Notes under the pieces: model-generated
Database searches by the model: none
What the model was told of the DNA's origin: nothing
The model's input: the letters and a program-made list of their open reading frames with translations, nothing else
Shown here: positions 9,834-47,599 of the stretch, piece by piece
Position numbering within the stretch: position 1 is the stretch's first letter
Layout: each line of letters starts with the position of its first letter
Translations under genes and position numbers: made by a program
NCBI RefSeq assembly: GCF_023055435.1
Contig: NW_025963779.1
Coordinates: forward strand, 60,760,001-60,824,000
Reading direction: 5' to 3'
From: Haliotis rufescens
Taxonomy: Eukaryota
DNA: 64,000 nucleotides

Positions 9834-9880
<47 letters not shown>

Positions 9881-17041: not shown

Positions 17042-18319
17042 TCATCCTTCTACACAAAAAGAAGTCCACAAACCAATGCGAACATGCAGCCTTACCGCTG
17101 GTGGGAGTAGATGTTTCAGCTGCAGGATGTCTTTGAGTTTCCCCGGTAGAGGCAGAAGATGTACAACACGATGAAGCTGAATGCCGAAAAGCCGTCGAAG
17201 CGTGAAACAAGACATGTCCTGTAGACTCCTAGGATTTGAGGTGACCATTCTCAGCTTACCCAGCATGTTTCGACCGTATGTGGTCTTCAGATAGGGATGG
17301 TCATCTTCCACCGTCACCACACTCTCCTTCAAGACCGGGAAGTACCCAGCCTTCAACAGACTGCCTGCAGCACCTGCCAGTTCTTCACTTTGAAGCGCCA
17401 AAGAATATGGAGTTTGGTTATTACTGTTCACCTTGTCTAATGCTACATTTAAACCAAAAGTCAAACACCTAACGGCCGGAGTATTCCCTAACACCAGATG
17501 GACAGGGGTGTTGCCATCGGAATCCTGGAGCTCTGGGTTAGCCCCATAAGACACAAGTAGCCTCACTGTGTCTAGGTAGGCTTTATTTTTCAGGCTGCCT
17601 TTTAAATTGCCTTTGATAAATGTTTTTGAGACTTCACAAATGCATATGATGTTTATGTCAGCTCCAGCTTCTAACAACACATGGCATGAACCTGCTTGAA
17701 GATTCATAGCAGCAAGTTGTAGAGGGGTGCTGCCTTCACTACACACCCCTTTGACATCACATCCTTCATCTATAAGAAGCTGGCACATGTCTGAATGTCC
17801 TTTCTTCGCTGCATCATGAAGAGGGAAAAAAACTTGATTCCCTCTGTTTAACATTGACAAGGATATGCCCTTCTGTCTTAAATACTTAACAACACACACT
17901 GAATTCCACTGTATTGCTGTTTTTAAAGGTGTGTTTCCGTTTCTATCTGGGCTCTTTAAACTTACATGATACCTGTCTACAAGAGTTCTAACCACATCTA
18001 GGTTATTACACTGACACGCTAGGTTTATAGGTGACACACCCAGCATTCCTCTCGGAGAGAACCCCTCCGATATCAAAGCAATCATCAGATCAACATTCCC
18101 TGTGATGCAAGCGGTCTCCACAGGCCCTATTCGGTACATCGGGAGTTGTTTATAAGACTTTTCTGAAATGCGACTGTCCTTGATATACGTTATAGTTGTG
18201 TCCACATCTCCTTCGTGTATAAAATTCGTCAAAGTCCTGAGATTGTATAGTGTGACCTCATTTCGCGCAAAGTAGTCTGTATGACGAAGACACTGACCCA
18301 TATTGACAAACGCGATCAT
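17042..18319 (-). CDS. Ankyrin repeat and SOCS box-containing protein (ASB-like), intronless, 425 aa
   Basis: Uninterrupted ORF with ~7 ankyrin repeats (SPINLAC, GNTPLKTAI, FPLHDAAKKGH, GSTPLQLAA, GNTPVHL, QTPYSLA) and a C-terminal SOCS box (PRSLQDMSCFTLRRLF...LPLPGKLKDIL). Confidence 0.93.
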   Translation of the reverse strand: MIAFVNMGQCLRHTDYFARNEVTLYNLRTLTNFIHEGDVDTTITYIKDSRISEKSYKQLPMYRIGPVETACITGNVDLMIALISEGFSPRGMLGVSPINLACQCNNLDVVRTLVDRYHVSLKSPDRNGNTPLKTAIQWNSVCVVKYLRQKGISLSMLNRGNQVFFPLHDAAKKGHSDMCQLLIDEGCDVKGVCSEGSTPLQLAAMNLQAGSCHVLLEAGADINIICICEVSKTFIKGNLKGSLKNKAYLDTVRLLVSYGANPELQDSDGNTPVHLVLGNTPAVRCLTFGLNVALDKVNSNNQTPYSLALQSEELAGAAGSLLKAGYFPVLKESVVTVEDDHPYLKTTYGRNMLGKLRMVTSNPRSLQDMSCFTLRRLFGIQLHRVVHLLPLPGKLKDILQLKHLLPPAVRLHVRIGLWTSFCVEG

Positions 18320-19344: not shown

Positions 19345-21856
19345 AGCTAGATACACGACGAGTTTTTGTTGCAGCCTGGTTCGCTTTAACAGTGCATCAA
19401 TTTGGGGATACCCTCTCTGTACAATATACCGATGTGTCCTGAATAATGTGATGAACCTGAAGCAATGTTACTCATCGATGACAAGTATCTCCAACCACAA
19501 TTGAAAGTCAATCATCGCTGTGTCGAAATCTGATGTGCCGTCGGTTTTAATTCTTATCCCGGAGAATGGTAATCAACGTGTTTGTTCATGTGAATAACGA
19601 TCTTCGGGTATTACGGCCTTTAAGGACCAATTGGAGCTAAATATAAACAAGTCACTAAGCACGCGGCTGCTTTCTGTTCTCAGAATATGTCATGTTTGTT
19701 TATTGTTTATTGTTTTACGCCGCACTCAGCAATATTCCAGTTATTTGACGCCAGTCTGTAAATAATCGATTGACACCATGAACATCGATCTACGCATGTG
19801 GGACACTATGATATGCATCAGCCAAGTCAGCGAGCCTGACCACCCGATCCCGTTAGTTGCCTCTTTCAATACCGCATTGGTTGCTTCTGCGCACGTATCC
19901 TAGTGCATACACTACTGGAGGAAAGGCTATTATATACCTATCATGACGCACCAGTATATACCGCTTATACGGACTTCAGATATCCGGAAACCTCGGTTCC
20001 CGGACGGTTTTCATTCAAAACGAAATAATTACTATATAAATTTACCCGTATATACGGAAATGTACTTATTAAGATATTACTTCTAGTAAGAATTGAGGTA
20101 TAAACCTGTAATAATCCGAGTTGTGGGTCCCAAAAACAAAGTTTGCCGCTTGACTGTAAAAAATATTCTGTCTCAAAGAAAATGTCAGTCGCCAACCAGG
20201 AATATTTAAAGGCTGGTCCCTTACGTTGGCCATCGACGTTTATAATAATGGCGACGGGACTATAACAATGCACTGTTTGTTCTCTTGAGCTTTATTCACA
20301 TAACAATTATATCCCACAAGAATAAACATGATGAGACCATATCAAGTAAATATAGAAATCAATACCGCCTTGCCTCAATACATGTACTTAAACTGATAAC
20401 ATCTGAGGTACTGGTGTACAACACACCCTTCTGTGTTCACGTCATGTATTGATTTTGAATCCATTAGCATGTTTAAATCCACCTCGTTGCTATTCAACAG
20501 CTGATGATATGTATTAATGTACAAGGAACTTCCTCAATAAAAAAACATTTGTCTCCACGCTGCCGGTTTACTATTTGATTTTCTTATTTTTCTTATTCTC
20601 GAAGATTATTATGTCATATTGATAGGTCGTTCGAAAACATCAAGACAACAACGTGCCAAAAAATGAAAATATCTTGACCTTGAGTTCATCACACTGTCTA
20701 GTTCGATTGTATTTTGTTAGACAGGAAAGTTTTTTTGTACCTTGGTGGGAAAATATAAATATGTTTAATAACAGTAAAATGTCTTCGTTATCCTACATGC
20801 AGCACGTCGATTCCGTCACAGGTTTCTGGATTCAGAGGTCATTTCAGTAGCATCACTGATTGATGTTCTGGTGTTTACATCTGAAACAAACAAGTGCTTA
20901 GAATTTACTACAGTATATGTGTTGGCGTTTATGTAGGTATAAACAAACACCGGTGTGCTCACGTTGTGTAACTTTACACAGTATTCACACTGGTGTTTAC
21001 GTTTAAAACTCCATAAACGCAAAGAAACATATTGAAGTCAATTCTTGTAAATAAAAACGTCAACAATAATAACTTCACCGAACGCTTATTCAATTATAAC
21101 CACACTGCAGATACTGTAGACAACAGTACCAAATCAGTGACAGCATTCAGTGCAGTAATGCAACACAAGTCACGCCCGTTCTGTTATCAGCCAATCAGGA
21201 AATAGTAGTCCGCCATTTGGCGTGGCCTGTTTCTTTTTGGTTTATGGAAACAAACCCAAAATACATTTCTGGTTTGCCAAACAAAAGCCACGGAAGAACT
21301 TGTATTGTATTTAGGAAACACTGATGCAGTTCAAAGTGACATTTAAACCGTGCCATTATTTACCATAGACAACAGCTCGGGGCCTACTTCCAGTCTTCAT
21401 TGTTCCCGCAGCTCTCTGAAAGGTCAAACAAGAGTAGATCACTTAACAAAACCGTGTTTGCATACGATGTGAATCATTAAGGATTTATCATTATTAGCAG
21501 CCCAACCTAATATTTAATCGTCAGTAAAATATCGATATAGTTTCTTCGTCAACTGCAACACCGCTCATGCACGGACACGCGCATGTGTTATGTTTACTCC
21601 GCACATTTACATGCAGTATCTGTCATAGAAAATGAAAGGGGAACGTCATGTATATGTACATTAGCAAAGCATAATGTACCCCCGGTACATGTACTTAAAA
21701 ACTACCAACAAAGAGTTAACATAAATAAAAAAAATTATTATCCTTCACGAGCGAATTTGATTTTGTATTGAACAAGCTCTGGCGATGACGTTTCAACAAT
21801 AATTCACGAGGGAGAGATTATCCGTATTCCAAGGTGCAAGGAGGTAATTCCACATA

Positions 21857-23033: not shown

Positions 23034-23158
23034 CTGTCTCGTGATGGACGGTAAAGTGTACAGTATAGGGTTGAGGGCCGAGTTGATTGGAAGAATGAAC
23101 ACAGCTGTCCATGCATACACCTCTCCCTGTATGGAGGTTCCGCTCAGTGCCACTATTC
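23034..23158 (-). CDS. GPCR exon 14: ECL3 and TM7
   Basis: [42 protein letters not shown] (NSALNPxLY motif), followed by GTATGT. Confidence 0.93.
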
Positions 23159-26100
23159 CTTTATACACAGAGATGTACATATATCACAGGGGTTCGTTTC
23201 CACATAGACAGTTAAAAAATATTACGTGCTTACGGACCGATTACTGTTATATTTAGCATGGCGAGAAAGAGTTGCCTGAGATGTATTTGCCAAGAAACCG
23301 TTACAAAAATGTTTGAAACTTTGCATCAGATGTTACATCCAAAAAAACATTTTTTCACATTGTGTCCTAAACAATTGCGTTGTTGGTCAAACAAAAACTG
23401 TTTGTCTTTTCAAGATAAAGTATGTCTTGGTAAAGTGACAGAATGTTAAATGGCTGGACCCCTCCTGTCATATATTTTGTTTTATTTTTTTGACGCACTC
23501 AGCAATATTCCAGCTATACGAAAGCAGTCTGTAAATAATCGAGACTGGACCTGAAAATGATTAACTTAATGAGCATCAAATCTATGCAATTGGGATACGA
23601 AGACATGACCTCAACTAAGTTAGCGAGCCTGTACATTGAGTCGCCTCTTACGACAAACATGGGTTCCAGAAGACCGATTCCGGATCTTCAAGAGGGTATA
23701 ATTACCACACAAAACAGTATTAATACTGTGCCAAATAACTAGAAGTGGCAGAACGATGTACATTGAGCTCCCATACACGGGTACCCTTGAAAACAACATG
23801 CAATACGCGATGTACGTACATCAACCAATGAATGAGAGACTATGTAAGGTTATCTTAACAGTATAGGACATGAAAATATAAGCCCTTGACACAGAAGCTG
23901 ATGAAATTTCTAAAAGGTTTATGGTTGAAATCTTTTTACCTGGGCCCACTTGCACAAACCGATCTTACATGTAGCCTTGCGAACATTGTAAGTTCATATT
24001 AGAATAGCAGACTTTACAACAGTTTTAGTGCTAAGAACGTTTTGTACAAGTGGGCCATGTATCTTTCATGCAGCCCTGACAATATTACGAATGTCTTATT
24101 CAAAATTATAGAATATGATACTCTTTAGGAAGTTGTGCAGGACTTGAAACTATTCTTCTGGTGTTCCTAGATACCTGAAAGTCCTACAGCAATGTTATGT
24201 CGGTATGTGTCCGGACTATAAATCTTAACTGTTTATTTCACTCTTATTGTACCGATACATTTGTATAATGTACTCACCCATAATGCAGACGGGAAACCAA
24301 CACATGAAGTCCGTCATTGCAACAAAGAACAGTTTCTTTGCAATTCTCAAATCTTGCTGCCGCCTTTCCTTTCCCTTCAGGAAAGACCCCTCTTTGATAG
24401 AACTATAGACGGTCCATTGACCGATAGCAATTAATACAAAAATGACAAAGTTGACCGCAATAAAGATTGATACAGAATACTCCCACCCAGCCAGTCTTTC
24501 CTTACTCAGAGGTAGGGCAAGACATGCCCCGTTCCTGCCATAGAAGTTCCAGCCTCTCAACGAAGGAAACAGTGGAATAACAGACAAGAAGATCGCTAAG
24601 ACCCAGGTACCGACTACTAGAATCCAAATACAAATTCTATTCAAGCGAACCTGGCGAAAGGGGAACTTAATGACCAAGAAGCGATCGAGCGTTATCAGAC
24701 AGACAAACACCACAGATGCTTCTGACGACAGTGTAGCCAGTACACCAGCTACCTTACACAGTGCAGAGTTTCGCCATTCATAGTCATTCCATACGTATAC
24801 ACCTCGATACCGAACATCTGCACCCGCTATGATCATCATGTACATGCCCATCAGTAGATCTGAGAAACCAAGATTGACAACAAAGAAATCACATCCATTG
24901 GTAGTTGACCTTCTGTTTACAACAATTCTATAAATGATGACGCAGACATTTCCCAACAAGGCTAGTATTCCTAGAATCCAAAGAAAGGCTCGAAGAATGT
25001 CTCGATGCATAAGGTCCTTACATGATGACAGAGAATTAACAGGTGCTTCACATTTGTTATCCTCTATTGTTGAAGGTCGAACTTTTGAGCAGCAAAGTAG
25101 GTAGTTATCTGTAGAAAGGTACGTTAATGAGTTCAACCCGCTGAACACCTGCTCACTAAATTGCACTACAGGATTACCAGAAAGATCCAGATCCATTAAA
25201 TATGTTAAGCCAGCAAAAGCGTTGTTTTCGATAAAGTCAATGACATTATCTCTCAAAAATAATTTTCTTAATGCTTTGGTGTACTTCAATGTCTTGTGTG
25301 TCAATTTCGCTATTCTACATTCCGAAATATCAAGGGAAACTAGACGGCCTAGTCCTTTGAAACCTTCAGGATTAATCCTATCAAATGTATTGCCGGATAT
25401 ATTTAGTTCTATTAGTTGCTCAAGCGATCGAAACACCCTCCCAGGTAACGATGCCAATATGTTATGACTGACATCAAGGTATAACAGATTGGTTAGTGTA
25501 CTGAATACGTCCGGAATAACTATCAAGCCACATTGTGACAAACAAAGCCTCATGAGAAAAGGCATTGTAGGGAAATCAGTTAGTTGTGGTATGTATACTC
25601 CAGTCATATCTAATTCTCGCGTGTGGTTATGAAGCGAAGTCATGTTGAAGTCATTCAACTTCACAGATGTTCCCTTGCACTCGGCCTTGGAGGGACATGT
25701 CATATGACAGTAACGTTCATCATCACCTAATGGACATTGGAAATTACCATCACAAATTTTATCTGGACTGAGACATACTTGTGACTGACTACATCTGAAG
25801 AAGAATGGACAAGAATATGCATCTGAAAAAAGACCGAAACGGTACTTAAGACATGTATCCTACTCTAAAAAGGCACCCGATTTTTTATGTGACGTTTGTT
25901 AAGCTGTTATGGCTAGCAAGTATTGTAACACATAGCCTTCCAATTGTGGATGTTCTTTATCCATTTTTTAAAAGTGTACTTGCAATTTCAACCTTCTCCA
26001 GAAAATTGTAACTTGACATTGGCAGTTATGCTATCATCAGATGGATATCGATTAGACAGATTAACATATACTAGTACTTAGTTTTTCTTTATTGCTAGTA

Positions 26101-29100
26101 AACGCACTTTTATGGTCAGTACACTTCAAAACATTATTTGTCAGTAGTAGATAATGTTTTAAACATACCACAGACGTGTTCATCTTCGCCTTCTTTACAG
26201 TCTCTTGTCCCATCGCAAACGTTCTCAGCAAATATGCATGCGCCATCACCACACTGAAACTCATCTACAAGACACTCCCGTTCATCTGAAACCAACATTA
26301 TACCAATAACGGAACGTTATAGTATACGTGTATTGCTAGAATAGGAATAGTTGTTCGGAGACGAGAACAGGGATAAAAGTGCATAAATGGTTCGGTGATA
26401 TCAATTATACTTTATGGATGATGAACATATTCACACTGCTATGCCGATAAGCCCATATTCATTGCACGTGTGTGGAGAAACTTAGCATTAACTGCTGATT
26501 AAAAGAAAGTATACACCCATGTTTGACGGTGGCTAAATATAATACGAACAAGACAAGACATGGTTATTCGATGGTGATGTATTTGATACGGGTATGATAT
26601 CCTTAAGTTAGCAGTGTTTCGGCAGACAACAGACAATTTGTACACTTACCACATGGCTCTATGGTAGATGGTGCAGAGAGGTATTTGCCGAAACCATCCG
26701 GAACTCTCTTGCAGTATTTCCTTGAGTCGTCAGCGGTGACTAAAGGAATGGTACAATAGTATTCGTGTACGACTTATGCATGTTAAATCATTTTAATTTT
26801 TAATTTGTAAAGCAAGATATCTCAAAAGACGAGTGTTTCTGTTCATCGCAATATTCAACACAAGTCTTCAAGTTACATGTAATGCTTGCCTGTTCAACGA
26901 TGTCTGTTATCAATCCATAAACAAATATATCAAGGAGGCATCTTCCCTTAACACCGGGAGGAAAACATTGTACAACAATCATATTTCGAATTTTGTGGTT
27001 ATAAGATGACATACACCACCAGTATATTGGGCTCGATCTTTTAAAATCGCAGATATGATGCCTCTTCGCTCCCAACTCATCCTCTTTATTGACGCCAGGA
27101 CAATCCACCATCCCATCCTTCACCCAGTGCATGGGCAGACACGTGCCATCATAGCACTGGAACTGCTGGCACAACCCTGTTGAAAACGTTTATTTGGGCA
27201 ATATAAATATAGTCTTTGAAAGGCATTTAGAAGTGATACACATGAGGAAGAGAATTTATGGATGTCAACGTCTTTATTATGAGGAACACAACGTTTCGGA
27301 GTATATGCTTACTCCCTCATCAGGTGAACCATTCACCCGATGAAGGAGTAAGCATATACTCCGAAACGTTGTGTTCCTCATAATAAAGACGTTGACATCC
27401 ATAATTTCTTCACCTGATGAGAGAGTAAGCATATACTTCGAAACGTTGTGTTCCTCATAATACAGAATTATATAAATTATCTTCCTAATACTCATATATA
27501 ATTATTCTTTCATAAACAATAAACTACATAAACATGCGATACTGCTGTGTTGGCAAAAATAGATGTCAGCTTTACGATTCACACAGTACAAGAATCAAGT
27601 TAAGAAAAGTACTGTTAAGCAACTCTTCAAAAAGGTAGGGGATACCCAGAAATAACTTAAACTTTCCAAAATTGTAAGCGATATTAGTTTTTCGTAATAG
27701 CTGTATGATAATAATAAACGATTTGGGAACACATTACAACCGGTAGTGAAGTATGACAGTAGATGTTATGACCGCCAACGACCTTGAAGGACGATCAATG
27801 GGAAATGTCACGTTTTAGAATCAGTATTGCGTAAGACCGCCCCGATTTGTCAAACATTCATTCACTCGACGAGGGATACTGCGTATGAATCTCCCAATGG
27901 CGATTTGAGGGAGTCTGTCCCACTCCTCTTGCAGCGCCTGGCCACGAGATCGGCTGCCTATGACGTTGACGCAAACGTCTCCTTATCATGTACCTAACGT
28001 GTACAATAGCTGCAATGTCTGGTCTCCTTGCTGGCCATGGCATTCTGTGGATGTTGTTCTGCTTCAGGTGAGCATTGACGATTTGTGCATGGTCAGCACG
28101 GGCGTTGTCGTCCTGAAAGACAAAACCTGCACCCACACGACTTGCAAGCGGGACAACAAAGAGTGTCAATATGTTGTCCCGATAGTACTGTCCACAATAC
28201 TTGCACAATATTGAGAGGGGTTCGGTCAGGCACAGTGATGCCATCTCACACCATAACTGATCCGGACGCAAAGCCAAATCTGTCATGAGGTCTCAGGTTT
28301 GCTTGACGTTCATTTCAACGTCAACGACCACGCCTATCAAGGATGTGCAAAGTTAATCAGGACGCATCTGAAAACGTGACACGTGACCAGCGACAATTAC
28401 CCTTGTTTCGACATTGTGTAGCAATATGACGATTTCTAAGGGCCGTTGAGCATGGAGATGAGCTGCATGTAGACGATTTCTAATCGTCTGACCCATATTT
28501 CGTACTCAAGTAGCCTGATGAAAGTTTACAACAAGTTGATTCTCCGTTTGCGTTCGATTTGGTAGAGCCTGGTTTCAAATCAATCGATCCTGTACTCTTG
28601 TCATTGACCTTGGACGCACTGAACGGAGTCGATCGACATGTTAGGTTTATTGGTACATGTTCCATAGTCTTCTAATCACAGACTGTAAAACATTGAACGT
28701 ATTGGCCAACTGACTTCTGACAGTTTCCTGCACACCAGTAGCCCGTAGACGCTCGTTGCATACGCCGCATCGCTTGTTCATACATTAACAATGAATGGAA
28801 TCTAGTAAATCACAACTGTATGATAAGCAGAATGAATAACACTGATAGAAATAATGGTCCACAGAGATCAATCGACCTTCCTTGAAAGTGTCAAAATCAG
28901 AAATGACACCCCTTGCGCGTGTGTGGCGCTGCTGCGTGAGACACGTACAAACTATAGGATGAATTTGATGTTAAGTTTTACAGACATAAACGATCTTGCA
29001 TGGAATGTTGGTCGTCAACACTTATCTTTGTTCCAATACTTGGTATTTACATTTCTATTTCATGATCCCCCTTTTTAGAGTATATATTTAGATAAAATAA

Positions 29101-32100
29101 AAGATAGAATAAAATTGAGTTCATGGCAAACGTTATCTACATCTAGATACATGAACATTGAGTGCACACCAGTCTATTTACCTGGGTAATATTAATGAAG
29201 CGCCGTGAGCATTCACTTGGTAATGGAATTTGGCGCATTTAAATGGATCAATAATGATTATTATGAGGTGAGTGGTTACCTTGTCAACGACTCATATTTC
29301 AAAAGTTGGTATTTGGATTAAATACAGCACATATTGGTACAGGTTCGCAACTGCACATAACATTTACCTCTTCAGTCTCCATATTAAGTATTTTTTTCTA
29401 ATTGGACCTTCTATGATACGTCGAAATGAGTGTATCTCTCAGCAGCTGAGTGTATAATTATATCGTGCATCAAACTGTGGTTGTAAGGACGTGGGCTTGG
29501 TGACAACTGCCTTTGCACCAACTACCGTATGGGACGTAATAAGCGCTCCGCTCTAATAAGCGCCCAATGCAATATTTGCTAATATATTGGCTAGTGAACA
29601 ATCCCAATTAGCACCCCTTCCGACTAATCAATGTGCACAAGACTTTTCATTCGTGTATAATACGTGTGTTATATGCATCCTTAATTATTGGAAATTAAAT
29701 TCTGGAAAAATATATCTGTCGTATATAAACATTTCATGCTGTCGGCATAAACCACGAAATTAACGATCTTTCAACTCTGTTGTTTTTCACCAAAATAACA
29801 TTCTAATAAGAAACCCCTTTTTTCTAATTTTGAGAGCGCCCTGGGCGCTTATTATGTCAAATACGGTAACTCACCTTCACAGCTTCTCTCATCTGACCAG
29901 TCCTGACAGTCGTTGAAGAGATCACACACATACTTGGAGAGTATGCACTTCCCGTTCTGACAGCGGAATTCATCAATGGAACACGGCGGGAACACTGTGT
30001 AACAGAAGGGAATAGATACAAGAAACGTCACCATTGACATCCGTGTTTGTCGGGGGTGTCAGTAGTGTTATAAATATAAAACATCAACGACAGAAAGCAA
30101 TCAGTCTCTCGATTATTCCACGTAACAGATTTCATTGGTCGTAAAATGCTGAATAGCGGTGAAACTAATATGAATGGTTTGTTGACAATCAGTGATGCCA
30201 CCACGAAAAGAGCTCTCCCATTCTCTCTGAATGGTTATTGTTTATATATATATATAGTTGGCCCAATTACTTGAATAAACCTGACTTGACTGGTGTGGAC
30301 TAATGACGATGTTCTAAGGCTAGCCCGCTGAGATACCATGCTACAGGTTACATAGACACCCAATACAGCCAAGTAGGCCTTGTTTTATCTGCCTAATGTC
30401 AAACACCTAGCTGGGAAATAGACCGCAGAACCTATATGAGTGAGTGAGTTTATGCTTTACGTCACATCGGCAATATTTTAGCCATATCGTGACGACAAAG
30501 AACCATTTCATTTATATTTTTTAATACGTGTTTGTATCGTTATCTTTCGTGTAATTGTCCGATTATCGACCACGAACGTTGATACTACTTAATTTCGTTT
30601 ATCCGACATACTCGTTAATCCGACATAATCATATGCAACCAACAATGTCGGATTAATGGGACTTGACTGTACATGGATTCTATCGGGACAAATAATGCTA
30701 CATCCCAGAGCACGACAAATGAGTAAAACAGTTACAGATAAAGTAGTCTTATAGACCATCGCAAATATATCGAGTCCTCTATAGTTAGAGCAAGTGGAGT
30801 GTCGGATGAGGATTCTAATGGGATCATATTAAAAAGTAGCATGTTTGCAACGACAGAAAGACTTTGAGTTAACGAGGTTTCGCTGCATTCGGGCTTCTTG
30901 TGTGACGCGATATGTGGAACAGAAAGACTTCTAGTTTATGAAGTTTCGGCATACCGCATGATCGCTCGTCTGAGTTGTCCCCGCAGTCATCCCTGAAGTC
31001 ACAATACAAGCTCGAGGAGACACAGCGGCCGTTGTCACACGCAAACTGGTACTGGGAACAGTCGGGCTCTTCAAAAATAGGAGTGAATGTATTAGCAACA
31101 TGATGACGGCGAGAGTGTTTAGTAATATTCCAGCTATATGACGACGGCCTGTAAATGAACGAGTCTGGGCCGAATAAACCAGTGGTTGATATTGTTTGCT
31201 ACACCCCACGCCGTAGGAATAGATGGCACGCAATCAGACAAAGCACCAAGTCTGACCATCAGATTCATTTACTCGTTTAGGGCAAATATTTGTTGCTTGG
31301 GACCTATTCAACCCTGGAAATCCTAAAGAGTTTTTGAAAATGTTTATGGCATATGCACGATGCCAATAGTTGTTTCTGGCTACGAACACGTTATTTTATA
31401 CAATGTGTATGTTTCTTTCATCTTAGCAAGATATAGATGAGACACACATATTTATGTATAAAGTCATTTCTTCATAGCCTGAAGTAACTTGAATTGAGTC
31501 AGTGGTTGAGATTTGACAGAAACCTAGAAATCGTATAATTATGTAATTATGACATATGTCTCACTCATTCACTCATTCACTCACCCACACCCCTTTCCAC
31601 GTGCACTGATATACTTGGGAATCAGTGTTAACAAATACCATTTAAAAATGTCCCTTACTGCACATGTATTCATCACTGCCATCTTTGCAGTCCGACAGAC
31701 CATTGCAGACACTGTGTGCAGATATCAGCTCCCTGTTGTCGCACTGAAACGTCAGCCGTCCGGTCTCGTTGAGATAATCAGCAGGAGACAGCAGTTGAAG
31801 AACTGGAACTAACATGACATGGCAGTGCGTAATGATGTTTAACAAATGTAAGATTGTTTTATACAGCTTCAAGACTTAGATAACTTACAAATGTAAGATT
31901 GTTTTAGGCAGCTTCTAGACTTAGATAACTTACAAATGTAAGATTGTTTTATACAGCTTCAAGACTTAGATAACTTACACATGTAACATTGTTTTATACA
32001 GCTTCTAGACTTAGATAACTTACAAATGTAACATTGTTTTATACAGCTTCTAGACTTAGATAACTTACATATGTAAGATTGTTTTATACAGCTTCAAAGT

Positions 32101-34363
32101 TAGATAACTTACAAATGTGAGATTGTTTTATACAGCTTCACGACTAAGATAACTTACAAATGTAAGATTGTTTTATACAGCTTAAAGACTTAGATAACTT
32201 ACATATGTAAGATTTTTTTATACAGCTTCAAGACTTAGATAACTTACATAAGTAAGATTGTTTTATACAGCTTTAAGACTTAGATAACTTGAGTTGACGG
32301 TTTTCATTATTGATAGGAGCAATAGGGTAGTCTAGTGATGATGTGGCTCGCTCTTGTCTTGGTATACCTCGAGATTGATGGGATACTGCAGGATCAGGCG
32401 CAGTTAACTTTGATACAGCCTACAGGTGTTACAAAAATGTTCTAACAAGAATAGTACATATTGCTGATGGGAGGTAAGCTGTGTAAATATTGCATCTACG
32501 CGCTAGGACATTAAATTTTTCACAACTCCAGGATGACACAAGATAATATAACACAGCATTACTACAACCTAAAATTAAAGTTGTAAGACTAATGTTCGTA
32601 CCTTGGTAAGAGCGAGAATGATTTCTGGCGGACGACTCACACAGAACTCCAGCCTGTAAACTGCTGGCACAGCCCATGTCATACCAGCCACCTTCGCGTA
32701 CAGCAGTACACAACTCATACAGCCCGCCGTCAGGCTCCGTAGTAGACGAGGTGTTACCGGCCCTGACAGACACACAGGCAAACTCATCATGTTCGCATCC
32801 TATTACGATTTGTTACAACCCATACAATTTAATTCAACTGCAAACTTATCAACATAAAGTTCACCCCCTTTAGGAATCCAGGTTAGAATAGGTCCCCAGA
32901 CATTTATGCTGGGAGTAAGAAGCGATCACTTGGGTCGGGTGGCTAGGTTCGGTGCCTTGGTTGACAGCGAGTCCTCGTATCCACGGCAGCATGGACCGTT
33001 GTTCACAATATCAATAACTAGATCCATTCTTGATATTTTATAGGCTGCTGTCTTAAAGCTGGAATGTTGCTGAGTGCGGCGTTAAACCACAAACAAACAG
33101 ACAACACATTAAGTTTGGTGAAATTTATGGTTATTGTCATCCCCCTATACCACGGTATGAAGAGAAAAACAATTTTAGGTACGACTTTTGTTTTACCCAA
33201 ATATGAATTAAAACGGCAATAAGGTACGCTGGTCCGTCACGAAAAGTGTCTGGTGGGGCGAAGTAGATCAATATGTAAATCCCTAAAGGCCATATCATAT
33301 GAATTATTATAAAAATTGTAATGGTAATTTATAGGAGGTAACGTCTTGTCAAAATACATTTTTGGAAGATTAACCGACGTACATGTACAAGATCCCGCAA
33401 ACGTGTGGGGAGCGCCTGCATGTTTCAATTAGAAAACACTATTTTTACCAGTTGTTATAAAGTAGAGGTCGGCCATCTTCCCAGAGAAATTGTCCCTTGA
33501 AAGTAGTTTGACCGAACGAGTACTTCCGAAGGCCTACAAACAATAAATACCGCAAGTATTGTAAAACCAATATTCAGTGTCAACTGCAAAACTAAATGCG
33601 ACATACAATGTGCATGCAAGTACGTCATTAATAGATATGGACATTTATATAATTAACTGAATCATGAAATCAAGACAGAAACACAAGGTTGTCTTTGATT
33701 GACGTTTAGAAGTTGGTAGACAGGAATGCATGTAGTTGTTATGGTAAGAATTTATCTGACTTGTTGGCCTCAACCACGTGAATGAAACAATAAAGACTGT
33801 AGTATTTCTGACATCAATATGAAGACATATGCATGCCTTCAAAATAAGGTGTTTAATGGCTCGCAAACGAGTGTACATGTTCTACAACATTCCGAATACC
33901 TACACCAAGCTCAGTGCAGATGCCAGGGTGTGGCATGAGTGACATAAAGAAGAGTATGTATTTCCCATATTGAGTAAACCAACTGAGTAAAATGATTGCA
34001 TGATACAGAAGTATAAAACGTCAACGCTTAACCAGTCTCGATTACTTCGATCTGGTATCTACATACAACAAAGACTTATGTTCGATCCCATGGTCAGTCT
34101 GTGACGTAGTTATTTCCTTAAGTATACGTACGTACGTGGCATCTGAAACAATGGGATAACACCTACACACTATCACTTCTATTGTATTTGTTGAATTTCC
34201 AACACATTACCCGGCTGCATCATAACAAAAGACGTCAAAAGATATTACTTGTTGTTACCCTGTGTCTGAGTCGGGTATCCATGTATAACTGCGGCATGGC
34301 ATCTCAGTGGGCTAGCACTATGAAGTCGGCATTAGACCGGACTATTGCAAACAGCCACGCACG

Positions 34364-34424
<61 letters not shown>

Positions 34425-37400
34425 GCTCACACACATACAGATATGCTCTCACAAGCGCATGCACGACGCTAAATAAGTGCAATAATCTTGAACGCGAAGT
34501 TAAACCCAATTGCACCTCACGTCGCCTGATTAATGGGATTCTCTTCGTGCAACTCGAATGTTGGGTCTCTGTACAATTCATGCTGTATCGATTTCCCTTC
34601 AAAAGAATACCTAACAGAAAATAGTATTCGATTGTTTGGCAAGATGTAATTGCCACGATGAAGTGAAGTATCAATGATGCATTGAGGCCTGCATATTAGT
34701 GCAAAAAAAGGATTGCCAATGTACGAAACACAGCATTTCACCTATATACACAGGCTGTGAGTTGACGAAGCGCTCCTTGATGAATTCATCTTCGGCTTGT
34801 GATGGTATGGAGGCCAAGGAGTACCTGCGAGATGAACATAGGTCCCTGGCCTCCAGCCACGTCCTTCTCAGGCGGTTGTTGTGGTAGTAACACAGGCCAT
34901 TGTGGTATACGTTGTACCTGTCGCATGTTGCTGGAAAAAAACGACATTATGATGCAAATATGAAGATAGATGTTGTTGGTGTTTCGATAATCTCTCCAAC
35001 AAGCAATTTTCCCAAACCTCGTTTAGCTGACATACAATACGATTTTACAAAAGGTCATCGGTGAATTGCGATAAAATGTGTGTAAACAACACGATTATAC
35101 AAGACGATACATTAATACATGATTGTTCTTTTGTATGAAAAGTAATTGTAAAATATCATTCTGTTGATATATGTAAGACAACATTCACTCAATCAATCAC
35201 TCATTCGACCAACGAATCCAATCGTTAACTTACGTGGACACAGCTGGTGATGAAGAGACTGCAGACCTCGAGATAAAGCTGACCCATTTTCAACCTTCCA
35301 TAATCCTTCCTGGTCACTGACAATGTGGCGCAGGAGGTCGTCCTGAACAGTTCCAATAACAAGAACCTGCACGTGTATTCCGCTCTGGTGAAGATATTGC
35401 GCTGCCAAGACATCAACTTCACCAAGTATTTCTTCTCTGTCTGTTATCACAATAATCATGTCATGTCTTCCAAGCCTGTCCCCTTTCTTACTGGTGAATA
35501 CATACTCTTTGGCCGCCCTCAAGAAGTCTCCAAAACTGGACCGTTCGTCTTGAAGCGTGAGGCTACCCAGCGCCTGTCGTATCTGATCTAACGATTGACC
35601 GTCCTGTAGGTACAGCCATATTTCACTAGCGCCTGTCATCAAAGCAATGCTGGTGTACGCGAGATCTAGCTCCGATATATAGAGTTGTATAGCTGCTGTA
35701 GTGGCGGCAAGATTTTTGTCTCCTATGTCAAGGACAATGGCGACATCGAGGTTCATCTGGCTGCAGTGGTCGAATCGAAGTGGAACGGATGCTAAATAAA
35801 ATTAATATAATGGTGTAGCTAAATACTGAGCGAATAAAACATGACGGTTCACAATATGAAATCTAATATATTTGCATTTGTGACAATAAAAACATCTTGG
35901 CAACTGAAACATAATAACAATTGTGATTAAATAGAAGAAATGATTTCACACAAGTTTCAATCATATACTGTGCACACAACAAAACAAATATCAGAACTGG
36001 CAGGGACAGTTGTCGTCATAAGGGCGGGTGGAGTGAAACGGAAAAGTACATCTTAAATTGTCTTTCAATTTCAGTTTCATCTTAAACTGACTTTCTATTT
36101 CAGTTACATCTTAAATAGACTTTCTTTTTCAGCTACATTTTATATTGACTTTCTTTTTCAGCTACATATGAAACTGACTTTCTATTTCAGTTACATCTTA
36201 AATTGACTTTTCTACTTCAGTTACATCTGATACTGACTTTCTATTTCAGTTACATCTTAAATTGACTTTCTACTTCAGTTACATCTGAAACTGACTTTAT
36301 ATGTCTTATATGTCTAAACTGACTTATATTTTATATAAATTGCCTTTTATTTAATCTACATGTTACATTGACCTTCCATTTCAGCTACTTCTTAAATTGA
36401 CTTTCCATTTCAGTTACAACTTTAAGTGAACAGTTGTCCAATATTGTCCTTTTCAAAAGTCTCTAGGTGGTCAACAAGAACATGATAAGTTTATTTTGCA
36501 TTTGAGTATATAACCTATATTTATAACTTTGAACTAACTTACCACTATGGATCAACCTTTCAACATCTGATAGTGTTTGATTCATCTTCTCAAATGATCC
36601 AACGATGATACAGTCTCTGTTACTGGCAATTCCATCGAAATCCTCCTTACGCAGGTCGCCTAGAGCAACAACTATAACAGATACCGCCGCTCTCCTCACC
36701 TCCTCGGCTTCCTGAAGAACAGATGACATGTTGTCAGGTGGCTGTGTTGTTACCAGAACTGCAAGATTAGGTCCATATCTGTTGTTGTTCCTATCTTCAT
36801 CCTCAAACATATCTTCTCGCATCATCCGCAACGCGTCCGTGATATTAGAGCCTCTGTTCTTCATAACTATACTTACAAAATCAGTGGTCTTGTGATAAGA
36901 ATAAAAATGATGTTCTACCCGGGCCATGTCACTGTACGTGATTATTCCGATGGCATGTGCGAATGGTAACGTTGACTGCAGATTTGTTTCTAGATCTTGT
37001 AAGGCCTTTTTGATGAGAGCGAAGTTGTCCTCTCCTGTTTTGTCCGTATTGTGGACCATGAAGACTACATCACTGCTGTGATTAACGCTATCGTAGGTGT
37101 ACCTGGCGGCTGCAAAATGATTTATTGGCTGAATATATACCGCTGATGTGTTAATGCAATACTGATACCTTTCCATTGTCGCTATATATTTGAAATGTGT
37201 TGATGCAAAGGTAGAATACTGAGTCACTTGAATCAAATAATACCTTTATCATCCATAATCGATTAATAATTGTAAAGAAGACGCAGCGTCTTCTATTGAG
37301 AAAAAAATGTCGATAAACTGACAGTATCTGCATGACGTCAACAATGATAGAACTTCACTATCGAATATGACGTCACTAAATCTCACGTCAGCATGTCTGC

Positions 37401-38283
37401 ATTACGTCAACTTAGGTTTGTATCATTAAGTTGGTTATATCTTGAATTACATGAATAACATTGAGTAGAAAGAGACGTGTGAAAATGGCTTTCCCATGCC
37501 CTACAGTACTGTTGATGTAAGTGTAACTCTTTTGGAACCTAATACAGACGCTTATGATGACGTTGTGTATTGACTTCACGGTAGTTGTGACATCACAGCT
37601 TAACTGTGATGCCATCAAGTGGACTATCTCAGCTTCCGAAGACGGTTCTCGGCCAGGCAATGGCACGTTTCGTAAAGTGTGAAACACCAAAACAAGAGCG
37701 ACCGCCTCCGTGGTCTAGTGGAAGAGCGTCCGCCCGGAGAGCGGAAGGTCCGGGGTTCGATCACCGGCCGCGTCATACCAAAAGACGTCAAAAGATGGTA
37801 CTTGTTGTTACCCTGTCTGGCGCTCGGCATTAAGGGGCTAAAACAAGGACTGGTCGGCTCGGAGTCAGTATACTGTGTCTGAGTGGGGTATTCATGTTAA
37901 ACTGTGGCATGATATCTCAGTGTGCTAGCACTATAAATCGGCATCAGTCCGGACTAGTACAAGCAGCCACGTCGCTATATAAGTGCAATAATCTTGGACG
38001 CGACGTTAAACCCAATTTCACCTCACCTCACCACCAATACAAGCGCCACGATACCATTACTAATATTGTATAGAGTGTGTGAGTGAGTGACTGAACGATA
38101 CTTCACACCGCATTATAGTTTACTAAAAAGACTTATTTTGAATTTTCAATGTCAATTGTGACAGACAGAAAGGCAGATACTGGTAAAAAGGGTGTACTTA
38201 CTGTTAGCAATACTGAAGGGACACATGACTTTACACGTAGCTAAGCCAAAGGTTAGCAGCGACAGGAGGAACATCCACAGCAT
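23034..38283 (-). CDS. Multi-exon GRL101-like / relaxin-receptor-type LGR GPCR with N-terminal 2x vWA + C-type lectin + ~6 LDLa + LRR + 7TM (whole CDS span; final coding exon unresolved)
   Basis: Exons with canonical GT-AG sites and matching phases: 38283-38202, 37109-36543, 35791-35234, 34930-34742, 33533-33449, 32762-32602, 31802-31659, 31068-30955, 29994-29875, 27176-27015 (or -26877), 26739-26650, 26285-26169, 25822-24278, 23158-23034. The sum is 4059 nt (1353 codons) with no stop seen. Confidence 0.85.
23943..24056. mobile_element. Short MITE (Harbinger-like ends)
   Basis: GGCCCACTTGCACAAA / TTTGTACAAGTGGGCC inverted ends. Confidence 0.6.
24278..25822 (-). CDS. GPCR exon 13: last LDLa, LRR-NT, LRRs, hinge, TM1-TM6
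   Basis: CPFFFRC...[16 protein letters not shown]; LxxLxLSxN repeats; hinge LCC...SSCKDLM; [21 protein letters not shown]; GTGAGT donor. Confidence 0.95.
26169..26285 (-). CDS. GPCR exon 12: LDLa module
   Basis: [36 protein letters not shown]; phase 1-1. Confidence 0.92.
26650..26739 (-). CDS. GPCR exon 11: Cys-containing linker
   Basis: cctttag acceptor, GTAAGT donor, 90 nt open in phase 1-1 ([29 protein letters not shown]). Confidence 0.7.
27015..27176 (-). CDS. GPCR exon 10: LDLa-like module (3' boundary ambiguous)
   Basis: [32 protein letters not shown]; phase-1 donors available after 27015 (GTATGT) or after 26877 (GTAACT). Confidence 0.75.
27287..27326 (-). ncRNA. Minimal type-I hammerhead ribozyme, copy 1 (intact core)
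   Basis: Minus strand reads CAC-CTGATGA-G-GGAGTA-AGCATA-TACTCC-GAAAC-GTT-GTG: stem I CAC/GTG, perfect 6-bp stem II, palindromic AACGTT stem III. Confidence 0.8.
27334..27373 (+). ncRNA. Minimal hammerhead ribozyme, copy 2 (core variant CCGATGA)
   Basis: CAC-CCGATGA-A-GGAGTA-AGCATA-TACTCC-GAAAC-GTT-GTG. Confidence 0.65.
27411..27450 (+). ncRNA. Minimal hammerhead ribozyme, copy 3
   Basis: CAC-CTGATGA-GAGAGTA-AGCATA-TACTTC-GAAAC-GTT-GTG, 77 bp downstream of copy 2. Confidence 0.75.
27620..29083 (-). mobile_element. Decayed Tc1-family transposon in a GPCR intron
   Basis: Remnant [13 protein letters not shown]...[13 protein letters not shown]; degenerate TIRs ACTCTTCAAAAAGGTAGGGGAT / ATCCCCCTTTTTAGAGT. 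Confidence 0.8.
29525..29866. mobile_element. TA-flanked MITE (Tc1/mariner superfamily)
   Basis: TA-CCGTAT...TAATAAGCGC at left and GCGCTTATTA...ATACGG-TA at right. Confidence 0.75.
29875..29994 (-). CDS. GPCR exon 9: LDLa module
   Basis: [35 protein letters not shown]; phase 1-1. Confidence 0.92.
30548..30669 (-). mobile_element. pogo/Tigger-like MITE terminus
   Basis: Reverse complement TA-CAGTCAAGTCCCATTAATCCGAC... matches 21857-21978. Confidence 0.65.
30955..31068 (-). CDS. GPCR exon 8: LDLa module
   Basis: [35 protein letters not shown]; phase 1-1. Confidence 0.92.
31659..31802 (-). CDS. GPCR exon 7: LDLa module
   Basis: [30 protein letters not shown]; phase 1-1. Confidence 0.88.
31840..32290. 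repeat. 45-bp minisatellite (~10 copies), intronic
   Basis: AACTTACAAATGTAAGATTGTTTTATACAGCTTCAAGACTTAGAT. Confidence 0.95.
32602..32762 (-). CDS. GPCR exon 6: C-type lectin domain, C-terminal part
   Basis: W|[18 protein letters not shown]...GWYDMGC...VLCE; phase 2-1. Confidence 0.87.
33449..33533 (-). CDS. GPCR exon 5: C-type lectin domain, middle part
   Basis: [29 protein letters not shown]; phase 1-2. Confidence 0.85.
34220..34520 (+). mobile_element. SINE family C with (CA)n(GA)n expansion
   Basis: Body and tail match the 37700 copy. Confidence 0.8.
34742..34930 (-). CDS. GPCR exon 4: C-type lectin domain, N-terminal part
   Basis: Translates [14 protein letters not shown]...[19 protein letters not shown]...EDEFI...VYIG; not in the ORF track. 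Confidence 0.88.
35234..35791 (-). CDS. GPCR exon 3: von Willebrand factor A domain 2
   Basis: ttttatttag acceptor, GTAAGT donor, 558 nt, phase 1-1; LDVAIVLD...GDR...IIVITD...[10 protein letters not shown]...LCP. Confidence 0.88.
36045..36425. repeat. 29-bp minisatellite (~13 copies), intronic
   Basis: CAGTTACATCTTAAATTGACTTTCTATTT variants. Confidence 0.9.
36543..37109 (-). CDS. GPCR exon 2: von Willebrand factor A domain 1
   Basis: ttttgcag acceptor, GTAAGT donor, 567 nt, phase 1-1; DVVFMV...IGIITYSD...GSNITDAL...LAVLVT...VIVVALG. Confidence 0.88.
37700..38031 (+). mobile_element. tRNA-derived SINE family C, full length (probable Meta central domain)
   Basis: A box GTGGTCTAGTGG, B box GGTTCGATCAC, central GTCATACCAAAAGAC...GCTCGGCATTAAGGG, CACCT tail, imperfect 15-bp TSD. 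The Meta assignment is from memory of the consensus. Confidence 0.85.
38202..38283 (-). CDS. GPCR exon 1: signal peptide
   Basis: [27 protein letters not shown], then a GTAAGT donor in phase 1 matching the next exon. Confidence 0.75.
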
Positions 38284-39979: not shown

Positions 39980-40735
39980 CTAAATATTTACTGGAATGTT
40001 TGACTTTCGCCTTGTAATACCCACATTTCGTTTCTTTTTGAAAGCTTTTCTGAGGTCTTGAATGTTACTTATGATCACATTTTGAGCAAATGTCGTAAGA
40101 CGCTCTTTGAAATCTTCGTAGAACAGGCATGCCCGACTGTACCTCAAAAGTTGTGAAACGTAGACACCAAAGACTGGAACTGCAGGAATATTACTCGACA
40201 TAAAAGGAAAGTTGGCCATTGGAAAGTTGAAGTTATCCCTCTCGTCATAAAGTCTTGTAGAGAAGAATTTTGGTCACTCTGAATCTTTATGCAAAGATGA
40301 AAATCAAAATCAGATGAGTCGGTTTCACTGGTTTTTTATTTCTAGTTCATTTGGGTACATCAGTGAAAGGGGGGCGGCGGTCGGGTAGCATAGTGGTTAA
40401 AGCGTCTGCTCGTCACGCCGAAGACCCGGGTTCGATTCCCGACATGGGTACAATGTGTGAAGCCCATTTCTGGTGTCCCCCGCCGAGATATTGCTGGAAT
40501 ATTGCTAAAAGCGGCGTAAAACCATACTCACTCACACACCAGGGAATTGGTTATTTCATCATTACTGAACGATATCAGATCATCGATAAGCCTGAAGCCT
40601 AAGTTAACATTCTTGGCCAAATTGCCTTGTTTTTATTTTCCATATCAAATTCCGATTCATATGCATAAAGAAACAGATCAGTAAGAAGGGGGGCACAATT
40701 GGTGCCCATGGGAATGCCTATGTTTCATATAGATG
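39980..40735 (-). mobile_element. Decayed Penelope-like element RT (probably Naiad/Chlamys type), interrupted by a SINE
   Basis: GIPMGTNCAP, IDDLI, YDERDNFNFPMANFPFMSSNIP...GVYVSQLLRYSRAC. Confidence 0.75.
40371..40535 (+). mobile_element. SINE family B
   Basis: Near-identical to 48960-49120; sits inside the Penelope-like relic. A partial copy lies at ~39867-39975. Confidence 0.88.
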
Positions 40736-45160: not shown

Positions 45161-46286
45161 CTGAGTCAAATTAAAGACTTCACATTTGTAAAAGTAATCC
45201 CATATATGATTTACAACGGACAAATGTATCAGAGAAGGTAGTTTTTAATCATTAATGTCCAAAGAAGGATTTTAATTAACGGTGGTAACCATAATTTGTT
45301 CCAACATCAATAACATCAATAGTTTAAATCATAAGTCCTAAGCACGAGAATCTGATGGCACACAAGTTGCCACGGATGACAAGAAGCATGGAACGTGCAT
45401 TGCCACAGAAAGCACCCCACACCATGACACTTCCGCCTCGAAATCTGTCAACTTCCTGTACACAACACTGGGCGTAACGTTCATGACGGCGCCTCCACAC
45501 CCTCGCCCTACCATCAGCAAATCGAAGATTCAATCGGGATTCATCACTGAAGACGACTTGATGCCAATTCCTCTGAGTCCATCGTAAGTGTCGCTGTGCC
45601 CACAATTGACGTTGACGTCTGTGTAATTGAGTCAAAATCGGCCCGCAGTATGTCCGTCGTGCTTGAAGGTGAGCAGTTCTCAGACGGTTTCGAACAGTTT
45701 GCGCACTCAGTCTACCCCTAAACAGTTCATTTCTGGTTGATGTAGCCGTCAAAAATCGGTTACGGAGGTGACGTAAGACAATCTGACGATCCTCTGCATG
45801 TGACGTCACACGTGGTCGACCTGGCCGAGGGCGATCAGCGGTGGTACCCGTTTGCTGTAGACGCGTCTGTAAATCATAAACAGTCCGTCGTCTACAACCC
45901 ATAGTCCTTGCGACTTCAGCTACGGACGTTCCCGTCTGCAACATGCCGATGGCACGTTCACGTTGCACATTTGAAAGGCGTGGCGTGACAAATGGCCGTA
46001 AAGACTTTTGTTTTCTTGTGTTTTTCTTTTTTTTGTTAATGACTGCTAACAAATATGGCTGAAAACACGTGCGGTATTATGGCTTCGTGACCAGTTGCAC
46101 GTGAAAAACCACTTTTGCCACTTTAGTGCTGTGCACATGATTTTGATCGATTCACCTGCACAAAAACGGGCTTTTATCTGAAGACAATACGTGGCCATTA
46201 CTGTTTAAATACACAATAAAGGCCCACAATGATAACTGGTCAAAATGTTAAAATTTTAGGATTGTGAAGTTTTTAATTTGGTTCAG
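45161..46286 (-). mobile_element. Tc1-family DNA transposon, internally deleted copy with both TIRs
   Basis: TIRs CTGAGTCAAATTAAAGACTTCACA / TGTGAAGTTTTTAATTTGGTTCAG flanked by TA; paired-like HTH and first catalytic D present; ~392-bp deletion at an AAC microhomology removes the second D and the E; ATG mutated to ACG. Confidence 0.93.
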
Positions 46287-46294
46287 TAATATTA

Positions 46295-47599
46295 TGCCGT
46301 GTTTTTTCAGCCTTACCTGTTAGCAGTCATTAACAAAAAAAAGAAAAACACAAGAAAACAAAAGTCTTTACGGCCATTTGTCATGCCACGCCTTTCAAAT
46401 GTGCAACGTGAGCGTGCCATCGGCATGTTGCAGACGGGAACGTCCGTAGCTGAAGTCGCAAGGACGATGGGTTGTAGTCGACGGACTGTTTATGATTTAC
46501 AGACGCGTCTACAGCAAACGGGTACCACCGCTGATCGCCCTCGGCCAGGTCGACCACGTGTGACGTCACATGCAGAGGATCGTCAGATTGTCTTACGTCT
46601 TGACGGCTACATCAACCAGAAATGAACTGTTTAGGGGTAGACTGAGTGCGCAAACTGTTCGAAACCGTCTGAGAACTGCTCACCTTCAAGCACGACGGAC
46701 ATACTGCGGGCCGATTTTGACTCAATTACACAGACGTCAACGTCAATTGTGGGCACAGCGACACTTACGATGGACTCAGAGGAATTGGAATCAAGTCGTC
46801 TTCAGTGATGAATCCCGATTTAATCTTCGATTTGTTGATGGTAGGGCGAGGGTGTGGAGGCGCCGTCATGAACGTTACGCCCAGTGTTGTGTACAGGAAG
46901 TTGACAGATTTCGAGGCGGAAGTGTCATGGTGTGGGGTGCTTTCTGTGGCAATGCACGTTCCAGGCTTCTTGTCATCCGTGGCAACCTCAACGCTGCTGC
47001 TTACCGCGATCAGGTACTGGCACCAGAACTTCTGCCTTTTATGGCAGCACATGGACCCGGTTTGATCTTCCAACACGACAATGCCAGACCCCACACAGCA
47101 ATTTTGAAAAGGAATTTCTTTCAGAATGCGGGAGTCAACGTCATGGACTGGCCGTCAAGGTCTCCCGACCTCAATCCCATCGAACACGTCTGGGATGCTC
47201 TTGGCAGAAGTCTGCGCACTCTCCAGAACCAACCACAGAATTTGCAAGATCTTGGCACCATTTTGCAGCAACAATGGCGTCGTCTTCCCAATCATGTGTT
47301 CACAAGCATCACAAGGTCCATCCGGAGGCGTTTTGTGGCAGTTGTCAACGCACATGGTGGCCATACACACTACTGAACTTGTGTGCCATCAGATTCTCGT
47401 GCTTGGGACTTATGATTTAAACTGTTGATGTTATTACCGAATACCGTAGGTGCTTGGAACAAATTATGGTTACCACCGTTAATTAAAATCCTTCTTTGGA
47501 CATTAATGATTAAAAATTACCTTCTCTGATACATTTGTCCGTTGTATATCATATATATGGGATTACTTTTAAAAATGTGAAGTTTTTAATTTGACTCAG
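46295..47599 (+). mobile_element. Tc1-family (DD34E) transposon, 5'-truncated copy with frameshifted transposase
   Basis: ATG at 46383; 17-bp deletion near 46600 shifts the frame; intact FSDES...QHDNA-x34-E (SPDLNPIE); right TIR ends at 47599 followed by TA. Confidence 0.93.

Follow-up and report, generated by a model that had tools for sequence, protein, structure and literature searches.

A predicted GRL101-like receptor gene of the abalone Haliotis rufescens with tandem VWA domains and a C-type lectin domain preceding its LDLa-LRR-7TM core

The Lymnaea stagnalis receptor GRL101 (UniProt P46023) and the mollusc GRL101-like receptors combine class A repeats of the low-density lipoprotein receptor type (LDLa) and a short block of leucine-rich repeats (LRRs) with a rhodopsin-type seven-transmembrane (7TM) domain, and in GRL101 itself only LDLa and LRR modules lie outside the membrane (PMC12297450). 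In Biomphalaria sudanica, GRL101-like G protein-coupled receptors (GPCRs) with a C-type lectin-LDL-LRR ectodomain have been described as candidate immune receptors tied to schistosome resistance (PMC12297450), and in apple snails GRL101 expansions are expressed in the tentacles and tied to chemosensory organs (PMC6573481). Lectin- or CUB-bearing LDLa-LRR-7TM receptors of the GRL101-like kind are already known, and are common in molluscs. Here we analysed a 64,000 nt stretch of the genome of the abalone Haliotis rufescens (C1:60760001-60824000, hereafter the window), in which a gene on the minus strand very probably encodes a receptor with this core, preceded at its N-terminus by two von Willebrand factor A (VWA) domains in tandem and a C-type lectin domain. 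A single gene encoding a class A GPCR of GRL101-like type, belonging with the type C leucine-rich repeat-containing GPCRs (LGRs) and equipped with a mosaic ectodomain, is the explanation that we favour and consider likely overall.

The exon model was based on stop-to-stop open segments with candidate splice sites, on a tblastn alignment of the RefSeq protein XP_048236709.1 and on a check of the intron phases, and every part of it lies on the minus strand. Domain scans, database searches and fold predictions were made on single exons, and the joins between exons were followed by phases and split codons only. The resulting gene runs from position 38283 to 20816 of the window, with 16 coding exons (E1 to E15, with E10b between E10 and E11) that add up to 4266 nt or 1421 aa; all 15 introns have GT-AG borders, 13 of them are in phase 1, and the phase check found no stop in any exon or split codon. 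The domain order is a signal peptide, two VWA domains, a C-type lectin domain on three exons, six LDLa modules (one degenerate), approximately six to seven LRRs, a rhodopsin-type 7TM domain and a tail. An earlier note on this DNA had proposed 14 in-frame exons running from an ATG at 38283 to a donor at 23034, all of which are correct by splice sites, phases and the lack of stops, but the span that it gave to the gene (23034-38283) is too short at the 3′ end, where two further coding exons follow (21415-21364 and 20880-20816).

The VWA domains and LDLa modules each occupy a single exon with phase 1 at both ends, and the lectin domain forms a block of three exons that likewise starts and ends in phase 1. 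Such phase 1-1 exons are the expected signature of exon shuffling of extracellular modules, and the extra modules of the abalone gene may have been added in this way onto a mollusc-type lectin-LDLa-LRR-7TM receptor. The locus would then present a GRL101-like ectodomain built by phase-1 exon shuffling and able to recruit VWA domains of the type found in matrix proteins.

Transcription across the modules was assessed with Logan contigs from four sequencing runs (X1-X3 of organism A and X4 of organism B), which were compared with positions 29850-35810. These runs comprise only 63–118 million letters each, against a genome of 1.33 Gb, too few for a single-copy locus to be assembled from DNA; as the contigs are moreover spliced, they derive from RNA. 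A contig of 440 letters (X3 record 20) consists of 30955-31068, 31659-31808 and 32602-32761, thus joining E8, E7 and E6 at exactly the predicted sites, and a second contig (X2 record 14) contains the E6-E7 joint 31808|32602, with 793 intervening bases bounded by GT..AG on the strand of the gene. The join of E4 to E3 is present in X2 record 15 (34741-34930 and 35234-35334), while X1 record 1 comprises exactly E9 (29874-29994) together with 41 and 251 letters that lie elsewhere; E10 and E10b together measure 252 nt. At the E3 acceptor (35792) the match of X3 record 21 stops, leaving another 224 letters that are not intron, and the run of organism B has counterparts of E3, E5 and E7 with slight sequence divergence. 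The RNA joints show that the second VWA domain is linked to the lectin domain at the transcript level, and the lectin domain in turn to the first and second LDLa modules. A split into two genes between the VWA/lectin exons and the LDLa exons, named in the earlier note as the outcome that would overturn its reading, is contradicted by the RNA joints E3-E4 and E6-E7-E8 and by the colinearity of two paralogues. A retrocopy as the origin of the spliced contigs was ruled out by a genome search, which found one identical copy each of E2, E3 and E12 and no second near-identical copy.

In the same contig data, several repeats within the introns (30447-30844, 31044-31242, 33034-33232 and 34228-34625) reached a summed RNA contig depth of thousands to tens of thousands in all four runs, and are probably abundant transcribed families of short interspersed nuclear elements (SINEs) or other transposable elements.

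The predicted first exon, E1 (38235..38283), holds the start codon and a hydrophobic, signal peptide-like stretch of 16 aa, and ends in phase 1 at the donor ACGT|gtaaag. The first VWA domain is encoded by E2 (36543..37226), for which the acceptor at 37226 was favoured over an alternative at 37142 because a Cys residue upstream of 37142 is conserved in the paralogues, and the second, more divergent VWA domain by E3 (35234..35791), with RNA contigs ending at both of its borders. The presence of both domains, also recognised in the earlier note, was confirmed with the Pfam VWA profile (cut-off 23.8 bits), which matched the open segments 36466-37245 (1.6e-17, 64.7 bits) and 35196-35801 (3.8e-9, 37.4 bits). 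By sequence, the best solved relatives of the first domain are collagen VI alpha3 (1e-21) and the mussel byssal protein PTMP1 (1.6e-10), while the AlphaFold model of the second domain, which is of moderate confidence (pLDDT 61, pTM 0.66), resembles the folds of integrin I domains, the A3 domain of von Willebrand factor (VWF), collagen VI and PTMP1 with template modelling scores of ~0.58. A search of the ESM Atlas with the first domain returned only plain VWA clusters. The metal ion-dependent adhesion site (MIDAS) motif is missing from both domains, with HNTDK in the first and DIGDK in the second at the position where other abalone VWA domains have DSSxS; the later MIDAS Thr is also changed, so that neither domain has the DxSxS ... 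T ... D pattern, and the same loss is seen in the two paralogues. PTMP1 (PDB 4cn8) and the N-domains of collagen VI alpha3 (9han, 4igi) are thus the nearest solved structures, in sequence for the first domain and in predicted fold for the second, and PTMP1 likewise has two VWA domains in tandem. In contrast to the abalone receptor, however, PTMP1 and collagen VI lack a membrane part, being secreted proteins of the matrix, and PTMP1 has a metal-occupied MIDAS (according to the title of 4cn9).

The predicted C-type lectin domain is distributed over E4 (34742..34930, the first third), E5 (33449..33533, the middle, with the motif FLWEDG...YNNW) and E6 (32602..32762, the last third, with EPD ... 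WYD ... Cys-Glu). In the single-exon Pfam scan the N-terminal half of Lectin_C matched 34674-34946 with 9e-4 and 20.4 bits, below the cut-off of 22.6, and E4 matched the C-type lectin-like domains of DEC-205 and PLA2R in the PDB with 3e-12. The acceptor of E5 coincides with a contig end of organism B (33532), in addition to its motif and splice sites. E6 showed a weak match with tetranectin (0.03), and a three-sequence profile of this last exon found no match in the PDB. The hallmark motifs follow each other in the correct order across the three exons. The EPN or QPD motif combined with WND, typical of calcium-dependent carbohydrate-binding C-type lectins, is absent from the gene, which has EPD and WYD, with QPD and WHD in paralogue A and EPT and WRD in paralogue B. 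Since the MIDAS is missing from both VWA domains and EPD/WYD replaces EPN/WND, it would be unsafe to assume either metal-dependent adhesion or canonical sugar binding.

The LDLa part starts with E7 (31659..31808, module 1, Pfam 5.1e-10) and E8 (30955..31068, module 2, 1.1e-9), both covered by X3 record 20, the latter with its acceptor at 31068, followed by E9 (29875..29994, module 3, 2.2e-13), which is represented in X1 record 1 and identical to the corresponding part of XP_048236709.1. E10 (27015..27176, 1e-5) contains a degenerate fourth module without Cys4 plus a linker, and E11 (26169..26285, 3.8e-10) the fifth module; both are covered by the XP_048236709.1 alignment, as is the intervening E10b (26650..26739), a 30-aa Cys-containing linker exon without a Pfam match. 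In total, five single exons exceeded the Pfam cut-off for Ldl_recept_a (2e-13 to 1e-5), and the sixth module adjoins the LRRs, where its paralogue counterparts score 21.7–22.6 bits, just under the cut-off. The approximately six LDLa modules proposed earlier are thus present as six, with the qualification that the fourth has lost Cys4 and is followed by the linker exon at 26739-26650.

The large exon E12 (24278..25822) encodes the sixth LDLa module, the LRRs, a hinge and transmembrane helices 1 to 6, including the class A motifs DRF and CWFP. Its open segment (24228-25859) matched LRR_8 in three stretches (5.6e-27) and 7tm_1 (5.2e-26), and a pattern search placed six repeats with a spacing of 24 residues directly before the first helix. 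E13 (23034..23158), assigned by motif, XP_048236709.1 alignment and splice sites, adds extracellular loop 3 and the seventh helix with an equally intact NPILY motif, and is followed by a C-terminal tail exon (E14, 21364..21415) and the last coding exon with its TGA stop (E15, 20816..20880), both supported by the alignment and splice sites. The best solved relative is the relaxin receptor RXFP1 (PDB 7tmw; 3e-56, 194 bits), ahead of FSHR, LHR and LGR4 (~1e-33 to 1e-34, with 122 bits for FSHR and 119 for LGR4), in agreement with the relaxin receptor-like 7TM domain and LRRs that had been recognised before. By sequence comparison this shows a real kinship with type C LGRs, with the receptor closer to the relaxin receptors than to the type A or B LGRs.

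The long mosaic ectodomain of adhesion-type modules before the seven helices is also reminiscent of the adhesion GPCRs (class B2), which may be functional analogues. Those receptors combine a 7tm_2 fold with a GAIN/GPS domain for autoproteolysis, in contrast to the 7tm_1 domain of the abalone gene, and membership of the adhesion class was rejected, as the Pfam scan of E12 gave only 7tm_1-type families and no GPS or GAIN.

A search of the genome with the exons found two further loci at which an LRR-7TM exon is preceded, on its own strand, by VWA exons ~15 kb upstream: paralogue A at C1:87919960-87938800 (87.92 Mb, plus strand; loci L013, L017 and L014) and paralogue B at C334:20382385-20399716 (20.38–20.40 Mb, minus strand; loci L016, L019 and L015). 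Both follow the exon order of the gene in the window on a single strand, starting with VWA exons (two in paralogue A, one in paralogue B) and a VWA2-like exon, so that A has three VWA-type exons, and continuing with three lectin exons, LDLa exons (four in A, five in B), an LRR-7TM exon and the exon with the seventh helix; Pfam confirmed VWA, Lectin_C, LDLa, LRR and 7tm_1 on the exons of both. Identity to the gene in the window is 21–26% for the VWA domains and 38–46% for the LRR-7TM exon, and these low values (21–46%) indicate a layout that is old and conserved. There are at least three VWA-lectin loci, as inspection of upstream regions covered these loci out of a set with nine further LRR-7TM loci, and the genome-wide Pfam scan for VWA covered the best 150 of 387 candidates. 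A quick IQ-TREE phylogeny of the LRR-7TM region paired the gene with paralogue A (Shimodaira-Hasegawa approximate likelihood-ratio test, SH-aLRT, 90), and placed gene, A and B in one group of nine rows (SH-aLRT 90) with three abalone proteins and two ENA open reading frames (ORFs), database entries whose N-termini are truncated or unknown. The gene and its two paralogues thus form a small conserved subfamily with the same colinear exon order.

A HMMER search with E12 against 1.84 billion cluster representatives identified 1680 relatives below 1e-30. Among 28 long relatives scanned with Pfam, 17 contained Lectin_C, 13 CUB, six F5/8 type C, three Kringle, two ApeC and two EGF_CA, and VWA was absent from the 25 families listed for these 28 proteins. 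Likewise, a VWA profile made from the abalone VWA exons found no such domain in the best 150 of the 1680 relatives, and a search with XP_048236709.1 among proteins of 439–1396 aa, a range just below the full length of 1421 aa, gave 81 matches of which none carried PF00092 and none was a close orthologue. In the literature searched, no paper was found that contained both "GRL101" and "VWA", nor one with VWA, LDLa, LRR and a rhodopsin-family GPCR in a single receptor. The earlier note knew of no characterised LGR with tandem VWA domains plus a lectin domain; this stands for the VWA part, but not for the lectin part, which occurs in 17 of the 28 long relatives and in the B. sudanica receptors (PMC12297450). 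The new element is the tandem VWA block only.

The SudRes2 receptors of B. sudanica resemble the abalone gene in having an N-terminal lectin domain before LDLa, LRR and 7TM parts, in belonging to a gastropod gene family and in being poorly annotated by automated methods, but differ from it in that they lack VWA domains, are described with a single LDL repeat and, unlike the three dispersed abalone genes, are encoded in a dense tandem cluster (PMC12297450). Compared with GRL101, the abalone gene adds the two VWA domains and the lectin domain at the N-terminus. RXFP1 and RXFP2 share the matching LRRs and 7TM domain and the position of LDLa N-terminal to the LRRs, but RXFP1 has one LDLa module, ten LRRs, a known peptide ligand and neither a VWA nor a lectin domain.

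On this basis we tentatively propose a mode of action, although we regard it as possible rather than probable. The receptor would reside in the plasma membrane, where the distal VWA pair, the lectin domain or both may bind a large extracellular ligand, more likely a protein or matrix component than a simple sugar, with capture by the VWA domains occurring without a MIDAS metal, as in VWF A-type domains. Binding would then be relayed through the LDLa/LRR stalk to the 7TM domain as in RXFP1, leading to G-protein signalling. A passage of PMC4837482 states that activation of RXFP1 requires its LDLa module. The sensing of adhesion, glycan or settlement cues suggested previously is a putative function, and both function and novelty had been overstated. 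A further-reaching version, in which the three or more genes form an old abalone class A subfamily whose MIDAS-less tandem VWA and lectin domains directly sense macromolecules of the matrix, biofilms or pathogen surfaces, seems improbable to us at present. If true, it would provide a class A counterpart of the adhesion GPCRs, possibly serving larval settlement, wound sensing or immunity, and in any case the VWA-bearing members are concrete candidates for class A GPCRs that read macromolecular cues.

Alternatively, the gene could encode an ordinary peptide hormone receptor, with a relaxin- or insulin-like peptide binding the LRRs as in RXFP1/2 and with the VWA and lectin domains in accessory roles such as clustering, matrix anchoring or folding. 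We think this rather unlikely. It would fit with RXFP1 being the best-matching solved structure over the LRRs and 7TM domain, and with the loss of the MIDAS in both VWA domains and the change of WND in the lectin domain. The abalone receptor has approximately six to seven LRRs, however, and to our knowledge there is no known ligand for GRL101 itself, nor for any of the receptors of the GRL101-like family expanded in molluscs. That family is also large, with varied N-termini (Lectin_C, CUB, F5/8C, Kringle and ApeC), and its reported associations are with chemosensory organs and with resistance to parasites, not with a hormone (PMC6573481, PMC12297450).

The public annotation bears on a second alternative. 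The RefSeq protein XP_048236709.1 ("G-protein coupled receptor GRL101-like [Haliotis rufescens]", 798 aa) is 100% identical to E8-E15 by tblastn and represents a 5′-truncated model of the gene, so that the earlier expectation of automated annotation splitting the gene was borne out. The model starts at an out-of-frame ATG inside E7 and takes its first eight residues from another frame before continuing with 'YQFAC', which implies an E8 acceptor at 31051 rather than the in-frame acceptor at 31068 used by the RNA contig; the two AG acceptors are 17 nt apart. The locus might accordingly yield two products, mainly a secreted VWA-VWA-lectin-LDLa protein and a separate shorter GRL101-like receptor, with the full-length fusion at most a minor read-through. 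We give this main rival to the single receptor fairly low odds. It is favoured by the out-of-frame start in E7 and the implied acceptor at 31051, at which the upstream frame would stop after five codons, and by the similarly short RefSeq models of paralogue B (511–539 aa). Against it, X3 record 20 contains the in-frame E7-E8 joint 31659|31068 together with E6, X2 joins E6 to E7, the shorter receptor would lack its own signal peptide exon, and the exon order is retained in two paralogues with only 21–46% identity, which is hard to explain unless the blocks were selected together. A decaying or non-functional fusion, arising from a recent accidental juxtaposition of VWA and lectin exons upstream of a GRL101-like gene, could account for the low expression and for the lack of an orthologue in other annotated abalone proteomes within the 143–455 and 439–1396 aa ranges searched, but is already largely refuted and most improbable, as the reading frame is open across all 16 exons with GT-AG borders at every intron, the receptor motifs are preserved, junctions are transcribed, two deeply diverged paralogues have the same layout and the organism B run contains slightly diverged copies of E3, E5 and E7.

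Several points do count against a single full-length receptor gene. With the acceptor at 31051, the upstream VWA-lectin-LDLa1 frame would stop after five codons, so the receptor may be accompanied by a soluble VWA-VWA-lectin-LDLa isoform or by a non-productive transcript. The E1-E2 junction lies outside the region compared with RNA contigs and is a prediction from the sequence, the E2-E3 junction is supported only indirectly by X3 record 21, the continuity of E4-E5-E6 relies on the split of one domain over these exons and on contigs that end at their borders, and the depth of the RNA contigs is low (~3–5). Paralogues A and B are known from genomic colinearity only, no VWA-bearing orthologue was found outside Haliotis, and the MIDAS-less VWA domains and EPD/WYD motifs point to no particular class of ligand.

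The truncation of public models extends to the whole subfamily. The protein entries for paralogues A and B (P0004, P0036, P0091 and P0236) are fragments of 511–547 aa, and a search with the first VWA exon among proteins of 143–455 aa, a range that excludes longer models, gave no match. Each of the three abalone genes is either truncated or absent in the public protein sets examined, with the N-terminal blocks systematically lost by automatic annotation, and corrected models will be needed before studies of the receptor repertoire, expression or genetic association in abalone, which are species of aquaculture and conservation interest.

The introns of the gene contain additional features. Intron 2 holds a tandem repeat with a 29-bp unit (36047-36429, 13.5 copies), and intron 6 one with a 45-bp unit (31842-32290, 10 copies, 92% identity), directly upstream of E7. 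Near 34300-34450 there is a (GA)n/(CA)n microsatellite. Intron 9 contains a long, near-perfect hairpin or palindrome (27259-27401), for which Rfam gave only sub-threshold matches to generic miRNA precursors and no hammerhead family at E≤1, and a minus-strand ORF (27861-28292) without a Pfam match, which resembles a transposase remnant by eye only.

The receptor gene is closely followed downstream, on the minus strand, by a single-exon ORF of 425 aa (17045-18319), which encodes ankyrin repeats with a C-terminal SOCS box (ASB-like). Further downstream, the region 8000-14200 has a strongly negative GC skew (-0.28 to -0.33) and holds 34-bp and 141/414-bp tandem arrays, with those at 12900-14120 showing 95% identity and being CTGCTACTA-rich; the region may be either a Ser/Thr-rich coding sequence or a satellite. 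On the other side of the gene, pieces of Tc1/mariner-type transposases with HTH_Tnp_Tc3_2 and DDE_3 Pfam domains were found at 45327-46052 (minus strand) and 46570-47373 (plus strand), and a tRNA-like element at 40379-40450 (plus strand; 31.1 bits, Rfam cut-off 29) is possibly part of a SINE.

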